64,000 nt of DNA from Octopus bimaculoides. Taxonomy: Eukaryota. The translations under genes were made by a program, and so were the position numbers. Under the pieces are notes generated by a model that made no database searches, had not been told where the DNA came from, and was given only the letters and a program-made list of their open reading frames with translations. The stretch spans positions 3,304,502-3,368,501 of the forward strand of contig NC_069001.1 of NCBI RefSeq assembly GCF_001194135.2, read 5' to 3'. This document shows positions 8,941 to 56,474 of this stretch, in pieces. The first letter of the stretch is position 1. The number at the start of each line of letters is the position of its first letter.

Positions 8941-11900
8941 AAATAGAAACCTTGCTTGGAATTAGGTGAGGATCAGTGGACAAGAAGGGCACCCAGCCAT
9001 GGAAAATCTACTTCAACAAACTAAATAGATAGTATGGTCATGGCTGGAATGCTTTTGATCAGAGGCCTGCTCAATCAGAAGTGACCTGGCAACGGTAAAA
9101 ACAATATCAAAACATCCTGTTTCCAAATAAGATAATATTTCCAAGTGGTCAGAAAATGTCATTTGCAGAATACTGGCAATGAATGACATTCATTTACAAC
9201 AATCACATGATGTCAAAACAAGGAGACAGAAAAATGCACATTCACATGCATACACACACACACACACATCTAGAATCACAAGTTGTAACTTGCCTGAAGA
9301 CCCTATGCACCTACAGGTGAAACTCAAAGTAGCAACAGACTGACTTCACCATAGGCGCAGACATGGCTGTGTGGTAAGAAGCTTGCTTCCCAACCACATG
9401 GTTCCAGGTTCAGACCCACTGCATGGCACCTTGGGCAAGTGTCTTCTACTATAGCCTCGGGCCGACCAAAGCCCTGTGAGTGGATTGGGTAGACGGAAAC
9501 TGAAAGAAGTGTGATGTATACATAAATATATATGTATATAAAAGCAAAACATTCTTAATTTATCGACCCCAGAAGGATGAAAGGCAGAGTCAACCTTGGA
9601 AGAATTTGAAAATAATAGGAGAGAGAGAGTAGTGTGAAACTAGATTTGTTAGGAGAGGAAAATACTTTAATTCCTTTTTATATCAACCCACTTGAGACCA
9701 CTTCTCATTCTAGGATACAAATTCCATTTCAAAGTGGTTAAGAATCATGCTTTCCAGCTACATGGTTTCATGTTCAGTCCCACCATGTAGCACAAGGGGC
9801 AAGTATTATCTACTACAGCCATGGGCTGAACTAAACCAGAAAGTGAAAATAACCATTTGTGTATGTGTATGTGTGTGTGTGTGTGTTTGTCTTGACATCA
9901 AGTGACTGATGTATATGAATGCCATTCATCTTCAATATTCTGCAAAAATGCATTCAACCATGGGGAAATATTACCTTGCTTGGAAACAGGTAAGGAAGAG
10001 CATCCAGCTGTAGAAGATTTGCCTCAATAAACTCTGTCGAACCCATGTAAGCATTGAAGAGCAGTCGTTAAAATAATGACAGTGAAAATGATCTAAATTA
10101 AAAGCTGCTATCAAGTTATGTTCCAAACACGCAGCTTAATAATGACAAAGTTATTTTGATAAATTCTTCATTATTTTCAAAATTAACTGCAACAAAAGCA
10201 GTGTACTTCAACAGAAATATGGTAACAAAAGTGCTAAGTGGGCGAAATCTGAAGCAGATGGGAAAAACTGAAGGATGATTATCATTATTAGTGGAAAGGT
10301 ATCAAGAAGAATATGAAACAAAGAAACAAAGTGTTCATCATCATAATAATTGTAGCAACGTCCACTTTGTCATTTCTCCATGAGCTGGACAGAGTTTACT
10401 GAGCGAGATGTTTTATGGCTGTGTACCCTTTTTGCCACCAACAGTTATCTGTTTTCAAGCAAGCCCCAAGGCCAGACATGTTTTTGTAGAATACTGGAAA
10501 TAAAGGAGACTGTTTATGTTATTCATTTACAAGTATCACACAATGTCAAGACAAGGAGACAAACACAGGCACACATATATATGTTTATATGTACATACAT
10601 GCACACAACTGGCTTCTTTCAGTTTCCATCCACCAAATCCACTCACAAATTTTTGTTGGCCCAGGGCTATAGTAGAAGACACTTGCCCATGGTGCCACAC
10701 AGTGGAAGAGAACCTGAAACCATGTTGTTGGGAAACAGACTTCTTAAGTCCACAGCCACACCCCTCCTCTGTTCCCTGCTATGTTCCTTCCCCAATTAGT
10801 AACTACTAATCTCTAACTCTCCCTAGTACCACCTGATTACTATTATAAATCTGTTCCTCTCATCTTACTCTCCCTCATTGCCTTGGCATAAAGTCATCAC
10901 CCACTCTCTCATCTGTTCTCTTTCAGTTACAGGGGTCACTTTATGACATGATTTTCACTAGTGTTGGTGTAACTTTATAAGTGTACACATTATATAATCT
11001 ATAAAGTGGTTGGCATTAAGAAGGGTATCCAGTTGCAGAAACCATGTCAAAGTAGACACTGGATCACAACACAATCCCCGGACTTGTCAGAGCTTGTTGA
11101 AAAACCCAACCTATCTCAGCATTGTATGTTGGACATTAAATAACGATGATGATTATATATATAATTCTATTTTTGCTGTACATGCACATAACTTAATATC
11201 ATTTTCCAGCTGACATATTTTCCATCCACATTTCCCACTCTTAAATATTTTATCTCATATATCACAAAGTGAACTGTGATATCCATGAAGATGAGTAATG
11301 ATAGAGAGGAATGTCTTTTTACATGTTCCAGTCATTAGGCTGTGGCCATGCTGGGGCAGTCATATGGATTGACCCCAGTGCCTTTTTTTCTTCTAAAGCC
11401 TAGTACTTATTCTATTGATCATTTTTGCTGAACCACTAAGCCACAGGGACATAAACACATCAACACCGGTTGTCAAGTGGTGGTGGGGGACAGACAGACA
11501 CACACACACGATGGGTTTCTTTCAGTTCCCATCTACTAAATCCATTCACAAGGCTTTGGTCAGCCCAAGGTTATAGAAGACACTTGCCCAAGGTGCCATG
11601 CAGTTGATTGAACCTAAAACCATGTGGTTGGAAAGCAAGCTTCTTACCACACAACCGTGTCTGCACCTAATGTTGGTGCAGAACAACCCAAAAGACTGTT
11701 CGCACTGTGAATTTATGTCTTTGTGAATTACACAAACAGGAAGAATAACACACAAATATACTATATAAAGGAATCCTGAAATATCTGAGTTCCCTTGAAG
11801 GACTCCTAGACGTTTCAGTGACCCCTCAACTTTTCGGCCAGCATTGAACTAAAGACAGTTGGTTACTTGTTTAACAACACAATATATAGTAATTGTTGAC

Positions 11901-12557
11901 ATAACAAACGACTTGTATATAACTCACTCATGAACAGATAATGAGATGATGCAGTCTACAAATATACAAGTATGTATATCAATAAAAAATAAAGGCTGTC
12001 ACAGAACGGTTGTAAAAATTCTTGACTTATAATGTAAACAAATACCTCCATAGATGAACTCATGCTTGTTTGAGTTGATATGCATGAAGACCCATATATC
12101 TGTGCATCTCTTTCTCTCTCTCTAAATATATATTTATATATATATACACACACAACACTCTACCCAGGCCTCTGGGTGTGTTTAGTAGAATTCACTCAAT
12201 TACAAGAATTCGAGTCAGGTTCCTAGTTTGAAAAAACTATACTTTCCTCCACCTTCCACATGCCTCGGAGACACTGAAAAGGGTCTCTGGGAACTGCACT
12301 ATCTCTTGACCAAGTAATTGTATGTGTCTGTCTGTCTATATATATATATATACACACACACACACTTGTGAAAACAATACATACATACACACATTTCGGC
12401 CATTGACTTGTGACAAACGAGGTTGATAACATCGCTCTCACCCCGCCTAGTACGTATTTTGACGATATCTATTTGTCGTACAGCTATGCAACGGCATAAA
12501 GGGACGTAACATGAAAAACACCGGTTTTGAGACCGGTGTAGCAGAAATACACACACC

Positions 12558-12643
<86 letters not shown>

Positions 12644-13066
12644 TATTTGCGTGTGTACAATTTCCGTCTACTAAATTACACTCACAAGGTAGTTTGTCAA
12701 ATCGAGGCTATAGTTGAAGACGCTAACCAGAGATGTCGCGCAGTAGGATCGAACACCGATCCACGTGGTTGCAAAGGAAACTTCTTAGGCACACAGCCAT
12801 GATTGTACCCATATATGTATGTGTATATACGTGCATGTGATTTCACATATATATAAACATCACATAAGCATATATGCATACACACATGTGGATTTATAAA
12901 TACACACAGATTATGCATAGCGCTTATTGTGTTTCCTCTCCCTTAACCGTAACGACCATAACCCTTTTGGTGATGGTGGGGAAGCGAATAAACGCCGAAT
13001 TGTAACATAAATTATATTTAACTCGAGATCATATATTGAGTGATCTTTCATGACATGTGAACACCA

Positions 13067-13098
<32 letters not shown>

Positions 13099-13219
13099 CT
13101 GTGTGTGTGTACACACATATATATAGACATATACACTATAGATATACATATATAGAGTTTGTATAATAAAAAAAAAACACTGTCGAGGTAATACAAAATT
13201 AATTAAATATACGTAATGT

Positions 13220-13283
<64 letters not shown>

Positions 13284-13869
13284 CGTAATAAATGTACGGG
13301 AATATAAAGACAAACACACATAGATGCATAGCAATATAACACAACGTTCATAATAAATGGGGAAAATATATTAATGTCTTAATAAACCTGAGGAGATATG
13401 ATATAATGAGTGTATTTTACACTATATCTCGCCTCCACCACCACGACACTATCGCTAGTGATATATAGTATTTCTAAATCCTGCTACTGCCACCATCACT
13501 ACTACTACTACTACTACTACTATACGGACATGTTCGTGTTATTACATATCAACTCGCATACTAATGTCCTTCTATATAAACACATAGAACACTAACGAAA
13601 GGCTACTAACCCGTCGACACCACTAATAGCTGATAGTGTTCCTTTTAATAATATCGCTAGGTCGAGCTTTGCAAGGACTTCCTATTATACTTCATCTATA
13701 GCAATATTTTCTATTATCATTGCCATCATGAAACATATAATTAAAAGAATAACCCCGCTTTATCGTTAAAAACTATCAAACGGGTTGATTGAAACGAAAG
13801 ATGATACATACAAGTACACATATGAATATATATATAGAAAAGGGGAAGAGATGGTTGATTCCGACATAC

Positions 13870-14050
13870 CTTTGATCAGTTTAACAAGACAGCATCCCTC
13901 TCTGTGAAATTGTGTATCAAATTTGGGTCTTAAAATCTGTTGGTCTTCTTTATCCTCTTCTTTTTTTTAGTAATGAATTAATAAGAAATGAAGAGACGAT
14001 GTTAGTGAGTGAGAAAGAGAAGCTGTCAATCTCACAAGCCGTCTTTCTCT
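13870..14050 (-). promoter_or_regulatory. Candidate non-coding first exon on the TMEM203 strand (donor at 13869; 5' end approximate)
   Basis: Minus strand aaag|GTATGT, a near-consensus donor in locally CpG-enriched unique sequence. Confidence 0.4.
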
Positions 14051-14712
14051 CTCGGTATGTCCCTCTCTATCTCTCTCCCGATCTCTCTCTCTCTCTCTCT
14101 CTGAATCTATGTAAGTCCCTCTCTCGATCTCTCTTTGTCTCTCCCTCCCCCTCTCTCTATGTCCTCCTCTCTCTATATCTCTCTGCTCCTCACTCCTACC
14201 CCGATCTCACTTTCACTCGCTGCTCACTCAGCAAACGTAAGTAAAGCTACAACGAACACTTCGTTTCGTAACAACCTTTGCATTCCTTCTCCCGTGAATT
14301 TACTAAAACTGCTAGTTAAAAAAAATCAAATGTTTAACTGAATAAAATAATCTTTCAGAAAAAATTATACATACTAATATTTTACAAATAAATGGGTTCT
14401 TAGAAAAACACTGGAATTATTAGCTTTAACTGAACAATCAGTAAAATATCACGTTTTGAGAACAAACCGGTCCTCCACTGAAAATAGTTACCGAATTAAA
14501 AGAATTCTGAGCACTTAATTAATAAGTTTAAAAAATTAAATTTTGTTTGAAAAAATTACAGAAAGTTTGATTTTATTAGTTTATCTACTCTTTAGTGTCC
14601 AAACTGTTTGTAATTTTAATAAAATTATGTTTTGTTCAACTTTAGTATTTTAAAATAATCAATACTGTGAAAGAATTCACCGGTGCTTTCAAGAGGCGAT
14701 AATATTGTTTCG
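14050..14712. promoter_or_regulatory. Putative bidirectional promoter / NDOR1 5'UTR exon region
   Basis: Plus-strand donors at 14055 (g|gtatgt), 14111, 14237 and 14713 (cg|gtaagt); CpG-richer than flanks; CT tract at ~14040-14190; lies between two divergent genes. Confidence 0.45.
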
Positions 14713-15049
14713 GTAAGTAGAAACGTTGAAACGTTAAGAGGTCTGTGTACCTGAGCGATCTTCCTAGTCATCATTCACCATTATCTTCATCTATCATTGT
14801 AAATTAAATTGACATCTACTCAGTGGCCACTGAGCATGAAAACTATTCGTTATTTCAGCGACGATCATTTCCAACAAGTGCTTTGTGGGGCAACGAGGAA
14901 ATTTTCTCACATGCTATGGATATTTATTGATAGTACTGGATAAGGCAGAGCAGTAGCTATTGTTATATATAATTTTATACTGCATATATATCACATGTCG
15001 GACTTTTATATATATATAGTTTTAAGATACACCTAGTAGATGCTCTCAG

Positions 15050-15270
15050 ATGCATCATGAGAAATATTTCTGGAGTCTAAATGGAGAGGGTTCAGGTCTT
15101 TCAACATCAGATTCTCTTGCCCGGAAGAGGTACAAAGAAAATGTGAAGTGTGCAAGTCCAGAGCCAACTTCACCCCTTCACTCCCTGCAGACCACCAGTG
15201 TGTGTCCTGTGGTGGAGCCTTCCAAACACATCAGACTGATCAGCCATAGCCGGGTGCACTGTGCCCTGTT
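15050..15270 (+). mobile_element. RTE/BovB-like LINE 3' end remnant with C-terminal C2H2 finger
   Basis: Frameshifted ...HQCVSCGGAFQTH(I)RLISHSRVH resembles the C-x2-C...H-x3-H tail of RTE ORFs. Confidence 0.5.
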
Positions 15271-15334
15271 TTCTTCTCCCAATTGATGTCCTTGTTCATT
15301 GTCAATGACAGATGAACTAATAATAATAATAAGG

Positions 15335-15925
15335 ACATGTACCGAGAGTGATAAAAATCAAACATTCAGTCAACATCATGGTGTTTGGAGTGATCATTAG
15401 TGATGGAGATGTTATACCTCCATTCATTTTCCTACACGGCCTCAGACTCAATACAGAGGCCTACATCAAGTGCCTAGAGGAGGTAGTGCTGCCGTGGGTC
15501 AAAAGCATGGCTGCTGGAGGTCCTATGTCTGGCAACAGGGCTCTGCACCATGCCACACAAGCAGGAGGACCCAGCCATGGCTGTCAGTCAATTTCTGAAA
15601 CCACATCACTCCTAACATCTGGCCACCTAACTCCCCAGACTGCAACCCCCTTGATTATTATGCATGAGACACAGTTGAGCAAGAGACCAACAAAACTCNN
15701 NNNNNNNNTAACTCCCCAGACTCCAACCCCCTTGATTATTATGCATGAGACACAGTTGAGCAAGAGACCAACAAAACTCCTTGTAACACTAAAGGTGAAA
15801 TGAAGGCAAGGATTATGGCAGCATTCACCAACTTAAACAAGGAGACTGTCCAGAAGAGTTGCAGGAGATTCCGAAGCTGTCTGGAGGCTGTGGTTGAAGC
15901 CAATGGTGATTTTATTGAATAAATT
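15335..15925 (+). mobile_element. Fossil Tc1/mariner transposase, maT (DD37D) type
   Basis: KHSVNIMVFGVIISDG...YVWQQ(G)SAPCHT...WPPNSPDCNPLDY...NGDFIE*. There are 37 residues between the second catalytic position (here D>G) and the third D; frameshifts and stops present. Confidence 0.8.
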
Positions 15926-19494: not shown

Positions 19495-20377
19495 TAGAGT
19501 TGTTGTTGATGTTGTTTCACCCAGGACAGATCTCATGAAGCAGAACTATAATCAAATCATTCCAGCCATGACCATCTCATCATGTATATGGAATTACTTA
19601 TCCATGGCCTTCGTTCTTTAAGACGGTAAGGTTTGATTTGAGAGGGAGATTTTGTGACCATAAAGAGCCTTTGTCTTCCATGCTGGCATGAGTTGGAAGG
19701 TTTGACAGGAGCTGGCCAGGTGGAAGACTACCCCAGGCGACTGTGCCAGTTTTGGTAGGGTTTTTACGGCTGGATGCGCTCTTCCTAACACCAACCACCC
19801 TGCAGAGTGGACTGAGTGCTTTTTATCTGGCACCATCACAGGCGAGGTCAGTTTTGGCATGGCTTTTACAGCTGGATGCCCTTCCAAATGCCAACCACTT
19901 CATAGTGTGGACAGGATGCTTTTTCTGTGTACATATAGATATCTTTGTGTGTCTCTGTGTGTGTGTGTGTATGTACACACACACATATATATATATAGAG
20001 AGAGAAGGGGGATGTGTATGCATGTGTGTGTGTATGTATATATATATNNNNNNNNNNNNNNNNNNNNNNNNNNNNNNNNNNNNNNNNNNNNNNNNNNNNN
20101 NNNNNNNNNNNNNNNNNNNNNNNNNNNNNNNNNNNNNNNNNNNNNNNNNNNNNNNNNNNNNNNNNNNNNNNNNNNNNNNNNNNNNNNNNNNNNNNNNNNN
20201 NNNNNNNNNNNNNNNTATATATGCACTTATGTATATGTATTTATTTATCATTTTAATGTCATGTCCCTCTCTTTCTATATCTGTCTTTTCCTCTTTGTAT
20301 CTGTCTATCTGTCTGTCTGTCTGTTTATATACTTATATGTCTATCTAACTCTCTATCTGTGCACCTCACTCTTCCAG

Positions 20378-39970: not shown

Positions 39971-40181
39971 TAAATATANNNNNNNNNNNNNNNNNNNNNN
40001 NNNNNNNNNNNNNNNNNNNNNNNNNNNNNNNNNNNNNNNNNNNNNNNNNNNNNNNNNNNNNNNNNNNNNNNNNNNNNNNNNNNNNNNNNNNNNNNNNNNN
40101 NNNNNNNNNNNNNNNNNNNNNNNNNNNNNNNNNNNNNNNNNNNNNNNNNNNNNNNNNNNNNNNNNNNNNNNNNNNNNNNNN

Positions 40182-41298: not shown

Positions 41299-41372
41299 CT
41301 CTTTAGAATTTGACATTTGAATCTCAGCATCTTGGAGTGATTTTTCTATCGTGTTTAATTCCTTCTGCCGTT
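41299..41372 (-). CDS. CNTRL: Centriolin exon
   Basis: ERQKELNTIEKSLQDAEIQMSNSKE; phase 1-0. Confidence 0.88.
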
Positions 41373-45911: not shown

Positions 45912-46076
45912 CTTTAACTCTCTCTGTTTTAATACAACTGCCGTTTGTGCTTCCCTCAATAAATTGTCGATGTCTGACTTCTTCTTCCCCACGTCCTCTT
46001 GTATGTTTGATAGTTCTTTCTGTTTTTGACACACATGCTTATTTAGGTCTTTCACTTGCAAGGCCAGGATTTCACC
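45912..46076 (-). CDS. CNTRL: Centriolin exon
   Basis: GEILALQVKDLNKHVCQKQKEL...LKQRELK; phase 0-0. Confidence 0.88.
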
Positions 46077-46844
46077 CTTAAAAATATGCATATATAATTA
46101 CACATACATACATACATACATATACATACAGCAATGTAACTACATACATGCTGTTGGTAATTTTTTTCCTTCTTTGGACTTTTCCCTTTTCCTTTCCAAT
46201 GAAGAGCTATGCTTGATTTGTCAAAAACCCTCTCTTCTTACCAAGCACACTCTAAGATGTAGAACAGGATATATATCTTTTACTGGGGAAGGCTGGTTTA
46301 TGGTATTACCCTGCATTTCCCATCCATAAACTGTTTACCTTTATGATGTATTGTCAGACCCTGAAACCTGTTGACTTAAGACCTCTTCAAAATATATTGG
46401 CTGACCTATGGTTATAGTAGAAGACACTCACCAAAGTGGCATGCAGTGGGACTGAACCAGGAACAATGTGGTTAGGAAGCAAGCTTTTTACCACACAGCC
46501 ATGTCTGTGCCTGGGTTGTAAAGATAATTTATGAACACCTGAATACTTTAAAAAGATATGTGTATTTATAATTATACAGAAATCAATTGTTCTGATCTGT
46601 CAAACTCCCATTTCAAATTATGTCTTCATCTTTGTTTTTAATCAATAAGTCCTACTCCTTGTATTACCCTGTCCTCATTCCCATCCCCACCTCTGAATTC
46701 CTTGTCTTATTTACCAAAGGCATCAATAATGTCAACATTTGACAACTGTTTAAATATTGGGGATTGATGGCATTTCTTAATGTCTAGTTTTGATGTGGGA
46801 GTAACGAGGTAGGAGTTGGAATGAAGTCAATAAAAATGAGGAAA

Positions 46845-47060
46845 CAGAGGAGGAGAAGAGGGAGGACAGGAGGAGGTGGAGGAGATGGAGGAGGGGAGGA
46901 GAAAGACGAAGAAGAGGAAAAAGAGGAGGAAAAGAAGAAGGAAGAGAAAGAAAACGTAGAAGGAAGAGGAGGAGAAAGAAGAGGAGGAGGAGAAAGAGGA
47001 GGAAGAGAAGGAAAAAGAGGAGAATGAAGAGAAGGAGAAAGAGGAGGAGAAGGAGGAAAA
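46845..47060 (+). repeat. Purine-rich (GAG/AAG) low-complexity tract
   Basis: More than 200 bp almost purely A/G. Confidence 0.9.
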
Positions 47061-48238
47061 GACAACATTACCTCCATCATATCATCACCAAAAACAACAC
47101 CAACGGAAACAATGAAAGCATCAACACCCCACCACCACCACTACACCATCTGTTTACATTCTGAGTTCAAATTCCACCGAGGTCAACTTTGTCTTTTACC
47201 TTTTTGGGGTCTTTGAAAATAAGTACCAGTTGAGCACTGGGATCAATATGATCAACTTGCCCCTCCTCTAAAATTGTTGGACTTATGCCAACTTATCATT
47301 ATTACTGACTAAGGTGGTGAGCTAGCAGAATCGTTAGCACGCCGGGCAAAATGCTTAGCAGTATTTTACCTGCCTTTATGTTCCGAGTTCAAATTCCTCC
47401 AAGATTGACTTTGCCTTTGAACTTTTCGGGGTCAATTAAATAAGTACCAGTTAGTCACAGGGGTTGATGTAATCGACAAATCCTCACATCCCTCAAGCTA
47501 CCCTTGTGGCAAAAATTTGAAATAATTATTATTATTATTATTATCCACTGATTGTTGTTGTTGTTGTTCCTTTATGACAGCTGCCAGTTGATGATGCTGG
47601 AGTGGATAATTCCACGAGAAAGACTTTTGAAATAAATGTAATTTGGATTATAAAGAAAACCGATTAACATTTTAGTGACAAGTTCTTCACGGTGAAATAG
47701 GTTAAGAATTCTATGAAACCATTTAAAGCATTTAACAATGGTTTCATTTCATAGACAGACACAGCTGTGTAATGACACTGCTACAACCGTTGTTGTTGTT
47801 GCTGTTGTTGTTGTTCTTGTTGCTATGCTGTTGCTGCTTACAGTTCTGCAGTTATTGTTGTTGTTCCTGTGCTGCTGTTGCTCTTCAGTTGCAATTACTG
47901 CAATTGTTGTTGTTGTCGTCGTCCTCCTCCTCATCATCATCATCTTCATCCTCATATTCGTCTTCATCATCATCAGCCTTCTTCTTCTTCTTCTTCTTCT
48001 TCTTCTTCTGTTGATGTTGTTGCTGTTGCTATTCTGTTTTTGATGTTGCTATTATACTGGGGAGATAAGGTGGGATGGTAGTGGTGTTGCAGTTGTTGCT
48101 GCTGCTGCTGCTACTGCTGCCATTGCTTAGCCTCCAAAGTAAGGACCCGATTCAACTGATCAGACCCTAACTTGGGAACTAAGCTACAAACACACTTCAA
48201 CAGTTACTATACTGTCTTTACTTTAGCACAAGGAAATA

Positions 48239-48530
48239 TGTTCTGTTTATCACATGTGATATCCAGGACATATTTCCCTGGCGTCCATGCATCATATATG
48301 ATACACATTCCCAATTTTATCTGTCCCGTTTATCACATTTGATACCCAGGACATATCTCCCTGGTGTCCATGCATCTTACATAATACATGTTCGCAATTT
48401 AGCCTGTCCGGGACATATACATGGGATACATGTATATGATACATGGACATATTTATTTCCCTGGCGTCCAAGCATCATATATGATACACATTCCCAATTT
48501 TGCCTGTCCTGTTTACCACATGTGATACAC
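48239..48530 (+). repeat. About three diverged ~85-bp tandem units
   Basis: ggacatatttccctggcgtccatgcatcatatatgatacacattcccaatttt..ctgtcc recurs near 48266, 48349 and 48450. Confidence 0.75.
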
Positions 48531-49218
48531 AAAGCATATTCCTCTAGTGTTGTAGGACTGCAGCCATACTGGAGCACTGTGTTAAAAACATTCAGGACAA
48601 AATTATGAAAATGTTTTGCACAGGCAAAGATTTAAAACATAAAGTAATCAAAGGCTCACATTATCTAATTAATAAATCATTCAAAAAATGGTTAGGAAAA
48701 AAATGTCACATAGTAAATGTGACAATAAAACATCGCAACAAATGCATCAAAAGTGCATGAAAATGTGTGTAAGTGTGTATATATGTATGGGTATGTATCT
48801 GTATGTGAAAATATGCATAAGCTTGTATATATGTATGTGTGTGCATGTGTGTGTATGTGTGTTGTGTGTGCATTGTGTGATTTTGTGTGCATTGCATGTT
48901 TTTTGTGTGTATATGCAATATGTGTATGATATAATATGAAGTATTGTAAAACTTATATAACTGCATCAAGCCATGTGATATGAAATAAAGATCCATGCAA
49001 GGTAAGCCTCTATGTTTATAAATGCTATATAAAAAATTGGTGTGAACACAAGCAATATGATATGCAAAAGATATCAAATATTATGTCATGCAATAAATAT
49101 ACATGGAAGAAACATTAAATAATAATGATAAATGTGATGCCCCAATGTACATGTATGTATACATGCACACGCACACATGCACATACACACATATGAAATA
49201 TCTTGTATATACACTCAC

Positions 49219-49224
49219 CTGCCT
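49219..49224 (-). CDS. CNTRL: Candidate 6-nt centriolin microexon (Arg-Gln)
   Basis: Minus strand ttttgtacttttcttttccttaaatcCAG|AGGCAG|GTGAGT; phase 0-0 between two phase-0 exons. Confidence 0.5.
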
Positions 49225-49749
49225 CTGGATTTAAGGAAAAGAAAAGTACAAAAATAGAATTTAAAAATAAATACATGAATAAATGATAATTTTATTGTAT
49301 CAAGAGATACAGGAAGACATAAGAAGCACAAACATCTCAGCTCAATTTCACCCCATTTTCTCTGAAATATTTAGGGACTTTTGTAAATTACTTAACAATA
49401 GCAAAAAATATAATTTTGTGGATGTGTGGTAAGAAGCTTGTTTCCCATCCACATGGTTCCTGGTTCAGTCCCACTGTGTGACACCTTGGGCAAGTGTCTT
49501 CTATCTTAGTCTTGGGCCAACCAAAGCCTTGTGAGTGGATTTGGTAACTGAAACTGAAAGAAGTCCATTATATCCATCCATCCATACATACATACATATG
49601 AACAAGAAGACTGAGAGCTGGCAGAATTGCTAAATCATACAAAACAAAAAAATGTTTTGCATTATTTGCTCTAGCTTTTTACACTCTAAGACATGCTATG
49701 TTTTGCTCTCTAAGGAACAATGAAAGGTTAAAAAGTAAATAGTCTATAC

Positions 49750-49876
49750 CTGTTCTCTTAATTTGCTGATCTCCAGTTTTGTCTTTTCTAATTTTCCTCT
49801 AGAATTTATCAAAGACTTTGTAGCTTCTCTCTCTGCCTCAGATGTCACTGTCAGCTCCCTCTGCACCAATTGTAGT
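49750..49876 (-). CDS. CNTRL: Centriolin exon
   Basis: LQLVQRELTVTSEAEREATKSL...ISKLREQ; phase 2-0. Confidence 0.88.
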
Positions 49877-50713: not shown

Positions 50714-51222
50714 CTAAAATAAGTACAAATGGTACATGGTTTAAATATGATGAACAACAACGACAACAACAACATCATGGCTACTGAATAAGTGTCATAT
50801 ATTTCTACAGATAAATTCCTCTATTTGCATAATATCGAGGTCTCTTTCTTTCTTTTATTGTCATTCCTGTCAANNNNNNNNNNNNNNNNNNNNNNNNNNN
50901 NNNNNNNNNNNNNNNNNNNNNNNNNNNNNNNNNNNNNNNNNNNNNNNNNNNNNNNNNNNNNNNNNNNNNNNNNNNNNNNNNNNNNNNNNNNNNNNNNNNN
51001 NNNNNNNNNNNNNNNNNNNNNNNNNNNNNNNNNNNNNNNNNNNNNNNNNNNNNNNNNNNNNNNNNNNNNNNNNNNNNNNNNNNNNNNNNNNNNNNNNNNN
51101 NNNNNNNNNNNNNNNNNNNNNNNNNNNNNNNNNNNNNNNNNNNNNTCAGCAACCCTTTCCATCTACGTGTATCCTCATGCTCCACCTAGTCCATTCTGTC
51201 CTTCTACGATGTGTATCCTTAT

Positions 51223-55734: not shown

Positions 55735-56474
55735 CTATCCAAACAGGAAAAAAAAAAAATGTCATTTTATCAATATCACTACAAGGTTATAATAATTGAT
55801 CTAATGTTTCAATATGCTTAAATATATCACCATAAAACAGCTCATTCACATTAATATTGTTTTAGCATCATAGAAGTATCGTGTCAACCATTTTAAAATA
55901 CATTCTTGCCTTGAAGAATTTTTAGCCAAATAAATTGACTCTAGCACTTATTTTTTGTTTCAAAGCCTGATAATTATTCCACCAGTGTCTTTTTACCAAA
56001 CTGCGAAGTTATGGGGACATACACAAACCAACACTGGTTGTTGAGCAGTAGTGGGAGACACACACACACACACACAAATATACACAACAGTCTTCTTTCA
56101 GTTTCTGTCAACCAAATCCACTCACAAAGTTTTGGTTGGCCTGAGACTTTAGCAGAAGAGACTTTCCCAAGGTGCCATGCAGTGGGACTGAACCTGTAAC
56201 CATGTGGTTGGGAAGCAAACTTCTTACCAGACAGCCATGCCTGTACCCATACTTCAAGTTCCGTGATTGGATAGTGTAGTAATCAGATAGGCTTGTTTAG
56301 TTTACAGTCTGGCAATTGTTCAGATTCTAAAACCTGAATGATTGCCAGATCAGGCATGATATGCCACACAAGTCTATCCAATTGCTGGATCATGCATAGC
56401 ATGTTATAAAGCCTTTACAATTACTGCACTATCAAAGCAGGAAACTTTAAATAGCTCACATATAACTCTTGTAA

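Follow-up and report, generated by a model that had tools for sequence, protein, structure and literature searches.

The hexanucleotide AGGCAG at positions 49224-49219 on the minus strand of the window (the whole 64,000-nt stretch of Octopus bimaculoides DNA analysed here) is, on balance, probably a genuine cassette microexon of the gene LOC106873177, which some transcripts include and others skip. With more assurance, we consider it likely that these six nucleotides are truly spliced into transcripts; the coexistence of inclusion and skipping forms is something that we infer. The exon itself is not new, as it is already contained in a public, superseded RefSeq protein, and as a representative of a well-described class it is unremarkable.

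The probable microexon and its flanking exons

As read from the sequence, the 6-nt exon encodes Arg-Gln and lies in phase 0 (the gene and all its features are on the minus strand). It is preceded by a 14-nt pyrimidine run, CTTTTCTTTTCCTT (49246-49233), which together with the adjoining AAATCCAG (49232-49225) forms the 3′ splice site (49225..49246), and it is followed by the donor hexamer GTGAGT (49218-49213). The complete 5′ splice site, CAG/GTGAGT (49213..49221), agrees with the consensus at 9 of 9 positions. On the 5′ side of the acceptor, a stretch of 109 nt (49227..49335) is free of AG. A first-pass annotation of the window had placed AGGCAG, the pyrimidine tract, the CAG and the GTGAGT donor at the same coordinates and on the same strand, and had located them in a 3.7-kb phase-0 intron; both descriptions proved accurate, the intron that separates 49750 and 46076 being 3673 nt long and bounded by the exons 49876-49750 and 46076-45912, whose junction positions it had named.

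The upstream constitutive exon (49750..49876), identical to the corresponding part of the two O. bimaculoides models described below, encodes ...LEISKLREQ, ends in phase 0 with ...AAA TTA AGA GAA CAG and has a weak donor, CAG/GTATAG. The downstream constitutive exon (45912..46076, 165 nt, phase 0 to 0) starts with GGT GAA ATC and encodes GEILALQVKD...; its acceptor is weak and lies behind a TATG microsatellite. Inclusion of AGGCAG divides the intron into an upstream part of 525 nt (49225..49749), which contains a SINE-like repeat at 49420-49570, and a downstream part of 3142 nt (46077..49218). The reading frame then runs GAA CAG/AGG CAG/GGT GAA, translates as E Q R Q G E and meets no stop codon. 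In-frame microexons are defined as exons of at most 27 nt (51 nt by wider definitions) whose length is a multiple of 3 and which create no stop codon; at 6 nt and stop-free, AGGCAG falls within this size and frame class, and it carries its own canonical CAG/ and /GTGAGT sites inside the intron. The inclusion junction reads GAGAACAG-AGGCAG-GGTGAAAT and the skipping junction GAGAACAG-GGTGAAAT, with AAGAGAACAGAGGCAGGGTGAAATCC and AAGAGAACAGGGTGAAATCC as the respective diagnostic k-mers. An origin of the microexon from a repeat was ruled out, as the segment 49190-49420 is single-copy in the window.

Splice-site strength and chance expectation

Splice sites were scored with a crude custom consensus matrix, so that the values are relative and are not MaxEnt scores. 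On this scale the microexon acceptor reached 10.5 bits and its donor 13.2 bits, compared with 9.0 and 5.0 bits for the upstream exon and 2.8 and 11.8 bits for the downstream exon. In a ranking of all AG-N-GT pairs that enclose 3 to 27 nt in frame, made over the two strands of the window, the microexon pair came first, with a total of 23.7 bits vs. 19.1 bits for the runner-up. Markov models of order 1, 3, and 5 predicted 0, 0, and 0.02 pairs as strong per 64-kb strand. The motif MAG/GTRAGT occurs twice on the sense strand, at the microexon and at the real donor at 45912, and is absent from the opposite strand. Of 3632 AG sites, 29 score at least as high as the microexon acceptor. The 109-nt AG-free stretch belongs to the top 1.2% of AG-free gaps on its strand, and the corresponding stretches of real exons in the window measure 17-94 nt.

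Extrapolated roughly to a genome of a few Gb, these figures would correspond to tens to hundreds of chance pairs of this strength in sense-strand introns. The rarity of the pair in one window is for that reason not a proof of its use.

The probable exon in public gene models

A 50%-clustered protein library was searched with a single exon of the gene (45193-44918) as the query. The search returned a 1528-aa protein, 97% identical over the exon, whose cluster holds the gene models considered here. Two models of O. bimaculoides LOC106873177, originating from different annotation runs, have Arg-Gln at the junction as their sole difference: XP_014775929.1 (P0007, 1881 aa) contains KLREQRQGEILALQ and reads KLREQRQGEILALQ, whereas XP_052831309.1 (P0004, 1879 aa) skips the two residues and reads KLREQGEILALQ. 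It is exactly the difference expected from the frame-preserving 6-nt exon that the first-pass annotation had proposed. The longer model carries a 'PREDICTED:' prefix and is now listed by EukProt and MetaClust only. Exons in the window agree with both models, and the window spans residues 369-1874 of the 1881. AGGCAG is also skipped in UPI0006958D4D (P0009, source MetaClust), a 565-aa fragment identical to part of XP_052831309.1 and taken to be the assembly's original gene model, as well as in O. sinensis isoform X2 (XP_029648959.2, P0005, 1517 aa). The O. sinensis isoform X1 (XP_036367725.1, P0001, 1528 aa) has a 13-residue insert instead.

Within the 3673-nt intron, AGGCAG is the only site at which Arg-Gln codons are enclosed by AG and GT (or GC), and an extension of either neighboring exon cannot yield RQ. 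We thus concluded that the older RefSeq model used this microexon. The exon directly upstream of the junction exon (50713-50649, minus strand), which encodes IITEKDREFRKLDSKIQTSNQ, bears on the origin of that model. It ends with ...CAAAG/GCAAGC, so that its donor is GC (50648-50647) and the intron downstream of it is of the GC-AG type; the exon is common to XP_014775929.1 and XP_052831309.1. To our knowledge, HMM gene finders do not place GC-AG introns without alignments. The presence of this exon in the older model therefore indicates read support next to the junction, and we infer that XP_014775929.1 rested on reads.

In the older NCBI annotation, RNA-seq reads were aligned by Splign and collapsed, rare introns were dropped, and the remaining alignments were chained by Gnomon (PMC5737279). 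Gnomon also extends partial models and may use an HMM of the GenScan type to close small gaps inside them (PMC5737279), and the 6-nt exon of the older model may possibly have had such an ab initio origin. The present NCBI pipeline aligns reads with STAR (PMC13077969), and standard aligners often miss microexons, according to the MicroExonator article (PMC7821500).

Junction k-mers (with a gap of 0-6 nt) and a degenerate back-translation of the downstream exon gave no match in metagenome scans. A 97-aa spliced junction peptide likewise had no match in a word-indexed protein search, which is insensitive to short queries, as the collection does contain proteins with exact matches of 25-28 residues. 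The searched literature yielded no paper that combines CNTRL with a microexon, and CNTRL is not mentioned in the single preprint that provides a set of exons for O. bimaculoides.

The assembly has gaps at 50874-51145, 39979-40181, and 20048-20215 of the window, in addition to six runs of 10 N. The first of these, of 272 N, is located in the intron that directly precedes the GC-AG exon, and the 565-aa fragment UPI0006958D4D starts right after it; a 795-aa fragment (P0006) terminates immediately ahead of another gap. We take the two models to have been split because assembly gaps adjoin their ends.

TGCATG motifs downstream of the probable microexon

Four TGCATG hexamers follow the microexon on the minus strand. 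Those at +38 (49176..49181) and +52 (49162..49167) from the donor are the two that the first-pass annotation had listed, correctly, at 49181-49176 and 49167-49162; both lie inside a TG/CA-type microsatellite, and the second aligns with a TGCATG of O. sinensis. The other two, at +127 (49087..49092) and +220 (48994..48999), are outside the microsatellite. The motif at +127 is part of a 78-nt run identical in O. sinensis, and the one at +220 recurs there at +239. All four are thus located in the downstream intron within ~300 nt of the exon. RBFOX proteins enhance the inclusion of an exon when UGCAUG lies in the intron downstream of it.

The sense strand of the window is rich in this hexamer, with 51 copies vs. 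12.8 expected from base composition (~4-fold), and 14 of the 51 occur in a microsatellite-like context. Against this background, two or more TGCATG within +10 to +100 were found at 1.8% of GT sites, and at least four copies per 230 nt in 0.1% of windows of that size. Two such clusters exist in the 64 kb, one being that of the microexon. The other (41684-41478, minus strand) is located in the intron upstream of the exon ending at 41299 and is partly microsatellite. The orthologous O. sinensis site has six TGCATG motifs (+40, +64, +70, +145, +171, and +239), in a background of 90-100% identity, and again forms one of two such clusters in its locus.

UGC between the pyrimidine tract and the AG, the mark of the SRRM4/eMIC type, was not found: the 90 nt that precede the exon contain no TGC, so this type is not indicated. 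The first-pass annotation had rightly reported this absence; the nearest copy is ~95 nt upstream. In human genes, TGCATG is over-represented downstream of alternative micro-exons, while the constitutive class is distinguished by the strongest splice sites, together with short flanking introns and a U-tract of the U2AF type at a distance of 10-20 nt upstream (PMC4317164). The octopus microexon carries both signatures, and the sequence therefore does not separate an alternative from a constitutive exon. Control of the microexon by RBFOX, for which the motifs speak, is a tentative proposal to which we would assign a rather low probability.

Two Rfam matches to mir-297, at 49138-49201 and 46088-46151 (both on the minus strand), scored 36 and 28 bits vs. 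a gathering score of 90. They fall on TG/CA microsatellites and are read as composition effects, not as microRNA genes; with such sub-threshold, microsatellite-driven matches, a non-coding RNA reading was ruled out.

Comparison with O. sinensis and a more distant locus

In the orthologous locus of O. sinensis (L001), where the intron measures 7257 nt, the exon is found at 20140-20145 with an identical CAG/AGGCAG/GTGAGT. Its 3′ splice site differs by one substitution in the pyrimidine tract, and the donor is identical. Single-copy intron sequence of the two species is 90-100% identical throughout, no less than the exons, and the conservation in O. sinensis consequently says nothing about selection. 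Conservation of the AG/GT flanks had been put forward as a test of the exon: the flanks are indeed intact in O. sinensis, but this carries no weight, given that the introns match like exons.

Two segments near the microexon do differ between the species. The TG/CA/TA-type microsatellite on the 3′ side of the donor (49146..49191, minus strand) differs in length by 18 nt, and the orthologous O. sinensis site lacks any equivalent of the segment 49420-49690. The latter segment (minus strand) belongs to a SINE-like family with copies in at least 18 other places in the window, e.g., 9365-9510, 56092-56236, and 11511-11656. This copy, 200 nt upstream of the microexon, is missing from the O. sinensis site and is therefore an insertion or deletion confined to one lineage.

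The 13-residue insert of O. sinensis isoform X1 is encoded by a separate 39-nt cassette exon, DTLCFSSFCGQEN (L001 25110-25148), in the same intron as the microexon, and its explanation as read-through of the upstream donor was ruled out. This exon has a good acceptor and a GTAAGT donor, lies 5.3 kb into the intron and is part of a ~2.3-kb segment without a counterpart in the O. bimaculoides window; it overlaps weak repeat-family matches and looks lineage-specific, possibly repeat-derived. Three exons 31-41% identical to octopus exons downstream of the microexon were found at 9992-15670 of a further locus (L002; ENA ERZ21867824, contig ctg120613l), which belongs to an unannotated eukaryotic contig, has an amino-acid identity of 38-41% and is presumably a more distant mollusc orthologue. 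The two exons flanking the microexon were not present in its 10-kb upstream flank, and the relevant intron was not reached.

Relationship to centriolin and predicted consequences for the coiled coil

With XP_014775929.1 as the query, all 51 of the 51 matches outside octopus were vertebrate centriolin/CNTRL (E-values 5e-41 to 1e-8). The alignment with pig CNTRL comprised a collinear BLASTP alignment of 710 residues as well as C-terminal and N-terminal blocks; the best relatives outside the genus are thus centriolins, with a long collinear alignment. The N-terminal leucine-rich repeat domain of an orthologue is absent from the octopus model in Pfam searches. XP_014775929.1 has no Pfam match, while pig CNTRL has LRR_9, LRR_4, and LRR_8 at residues 131-278. 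The octopus model begins opposite residue 619 of pig CNTRL in the alignment, and it may be N-terminally truncated or the leucine-rich part may be a separate gene. The first-pass identification of the gene as centriolin accordingly stands as far as its relatives are concerned, but in the absence of the domain 'centriolin-like' is the safe name.

Skipping of the microexon preserves the vertebrate arrangement, as the first-pass annotation had stated for human CNTRL: KLREQ and KQKEL are separated by 17 residues in octopus, as are KLKSQ and KKEEL in pig, and inclusion of RQ forces a 2-residue gap in the alignment. The heptad register was assessed by a simple a/d hydrophobicity score of the two 28-residue stretches that flank the junction. 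Both sides share one register in the skipped form. In the RQ form the best downstream register moves by two positions, with the exon at a g/a boundary, and the shift of coiled-coil register that had been predicted for Arg-Gln inclusion was thereby recovered with this score.

Two further features of the gene were noted. A single exon of ~1.3 kb (58535-57199, minus strand) encodes a Gln/Pro-rich, low-complexity sequence with repeated NHQPQQLYT-like units and shows no alignment to pig CNTRL. A tandem acceptor (58535-58529, minus strand; ttcttcag/CTTTAG/AC) gives either SDN-AL-DYQ or SDN-DYQ, a second 6-nt splicing difference in the gene; exactly these two residues, Ala-Leu, also distinguish isoform X1 from isoform X2 in O. 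sinensis.

Proposed mode of inclusion and competing explanations

We propose that an exon of only 6 nt would be visible to the spliceosome owing to the unusual strength of its two sites, with a U-rich tract 9-22 nt upstream of the CAG and a donor fully complementary to U1. The weakness of the neighboring sites, i.e., the upstream donor CAG/GTATAG and the downstream acceptor behind the TATG repeat, would act in the same direction, as might the short upstream intron of 525 nt. Inclusion would put Arg-Gln between Gln1356 and Gly (numbering of XP_014775929.1), between positions g and a of a heptad repeat that is unbroken apart from this, so that everything downstream would shift by two register positions, and skipping would give the vertebrate centriolin spacing. 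As the four UGCAUG motifs (+38 to +220) lie in the RBFOX enhancing position, RBFOX-dependent, tissue-regulated inclusion would be the favored mode of control. Several observations speak against a cassette exon: four models skip AGGCAG (XP_052831309.1, UPI0006958D4D, and both O. sinensis isoforms), an insertion of two residues is an awkward break in a coiled coil and departs from the vertebrate spacing, half of the TGCATG motifs belong to a microsatellite of variable length, the acceptor has no UGC nearby, and the inclusion form comes from a predicted model.

Much of the same evidence would also suit a microexon that is real but constitutive, the skipping models being artefacts of aligners and model builders faced with 6-nt exons. 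Strong sites, a short flanking intron, and a U-tract are all present, as in the human constitutive class (PMC4317164), the competing neighboring sites are weak, the older model has a single product, the inclusion form, and the pipeline moved from Splign to STAR between the annotations (PMC5737279, PMC13077969). Yet AGGCAG is skipped by four independent models from two species, the skipped form preserves both the heptad register and the vertebrate spacing, and dense downstream TGCATG is the signature of alternative micro-exons (PMC4317164); we hold constitutive inclusion to be unlikely. A low probability is likewise given to the opposite view, in which AGGCAG is bounded by an unused chance acceptor and donor, entered the older RefSeq model by HMM gap-filling, and was later corrected. 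Gnomon does fill small gaps with a GenScan-type HMM (PMC5737279), base composition predicts about one consensus donor on each 64-kb strand, tens to hundreds of equal chance pairs may exist in sense-strand introns genome-wide by our rough estimate, every later model skips AGGCAG, and the O. sinensis conservation is uninformative. Against such an artefact, the other exons of the two models are identical, including the GC-AG neighbor, which argues for reads; a 6-nt exon is by our reasoning without a coding score and bears length and extra-intron penalties in an HMM of this type; a pair of this strength is expected at most 0.02 times per strand in the window; and the pair coincides with a TGCATG cluster of 0.1% frequency.

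An explanation of a different kind would make the site a recursive one, with the 3.7-kb intron removed in two steps and nothing left in the mRNA, or else a decoy whose consensus donor merely recruits U1. A pyrimidine tract with CAG/GTGAGT does correspond to the consensus of recursive sites, and AG and GT are juxtaposed at 49219/49218. However, the AG abutting the donor (49220-49219) reaches no more than 4.6 bits and comes third, after two other AGs, and a zero-length site cannot account for the Arg-Gln of XP_014775929.1. At 3.7 kb, the intron is also short by the standard of those known to be spliced recursively. A recursive site is a zero-length AG/GTRAGT, typically in a very long intron, and the site does not conform to this, as the annotated product keeps the 6 nt; we therefore regard this explanation as very improbable. 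Among all these readings, a cassette microexon remains the one that we prefer.

Relation to known systems and significance

The octopus microexon resembles the in-frame microexons of 3-27 nt described in vertebrates and insects in being 6 nt long, frame-preserving, alone in its intron, and bounded by canonical AG/GT, and in adding two residues to a structured protein region. It differs in its host, a centrosomal coiled-coil protein and not a typical neuronal signaling or trafficking protein. With the RBFOX-enhanced alternative micro-exons (Li et al., 2015; PMC4317164) it shares downstream TGCATG within ~200 nt and a strong pyrimidine tract, with four copies in O. bimaculoides and six in O. sinensis, but two of the octopus motifs lie in a microsatellite, and the splice sites are stronger than is typical of the alternative class. 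SRRM4/eMIC-dependent neural microexons of fly and mammal (PMC8797185) are alike in size class and in the upstream pyrimidine tract; the octopus exon lacks their UGC near the acceptor and is not to be classed with them. Constitutive micro-exons (PMC4317164), such as the 4-nt exon of MPC1 (PMC9929638), offer a parallel in the consensus donor, the U-rich tract 9-22 nt upstream, and the upstream intron of 525 nt, whereas the octopus exon is skipped in several models and its skipped form has the ancestral spacing. Recursive splice sites (ratchet points) are similar in having AG/GTGAGT behind a pyrimidine tract; the octopus intron is short by comparison, its zero-length AG is weak and preceded by others, and the product retains the 6 nt. 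Finally, the octopus exon resembles microexons lost or misannotated by pipelines (plants, PMC8831610; MicroExonator, PMC7821500) in that one annotation release of the gene contains it and the next, otherwise unchanged, does not; in octopus the cause of the loss is deduced from the change of pipeline.

A more far-reaching reading would make the exon an octopod-lineage, RBFOX-driven switch, in neurons and/or muscle, that moves the heptad register of the central centriolin coiled coil by two residues; its disappearance from present annotations would then be due solely to short-read aligners, which are unable to place 6 nt. This is speculative and less probable still than RBFOX control as such. 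From one annotation release to the other, a 6-nt exon disappeared from the model of this gene while all else stayed unchanged, which is a warning for studies of cephalopod microexons that rely on current gene sets. If inclusion is tissue-regulated, the two-residue register shift in a centrosomal coiled coil would offer a simple means of testing how long coiled-coil scaffolds are tuned by microexons beyond vertebrates and insects. And if the octopod switch were real, further exons of this kind would probably have been lost in the same way from current cephalopod gene sets.
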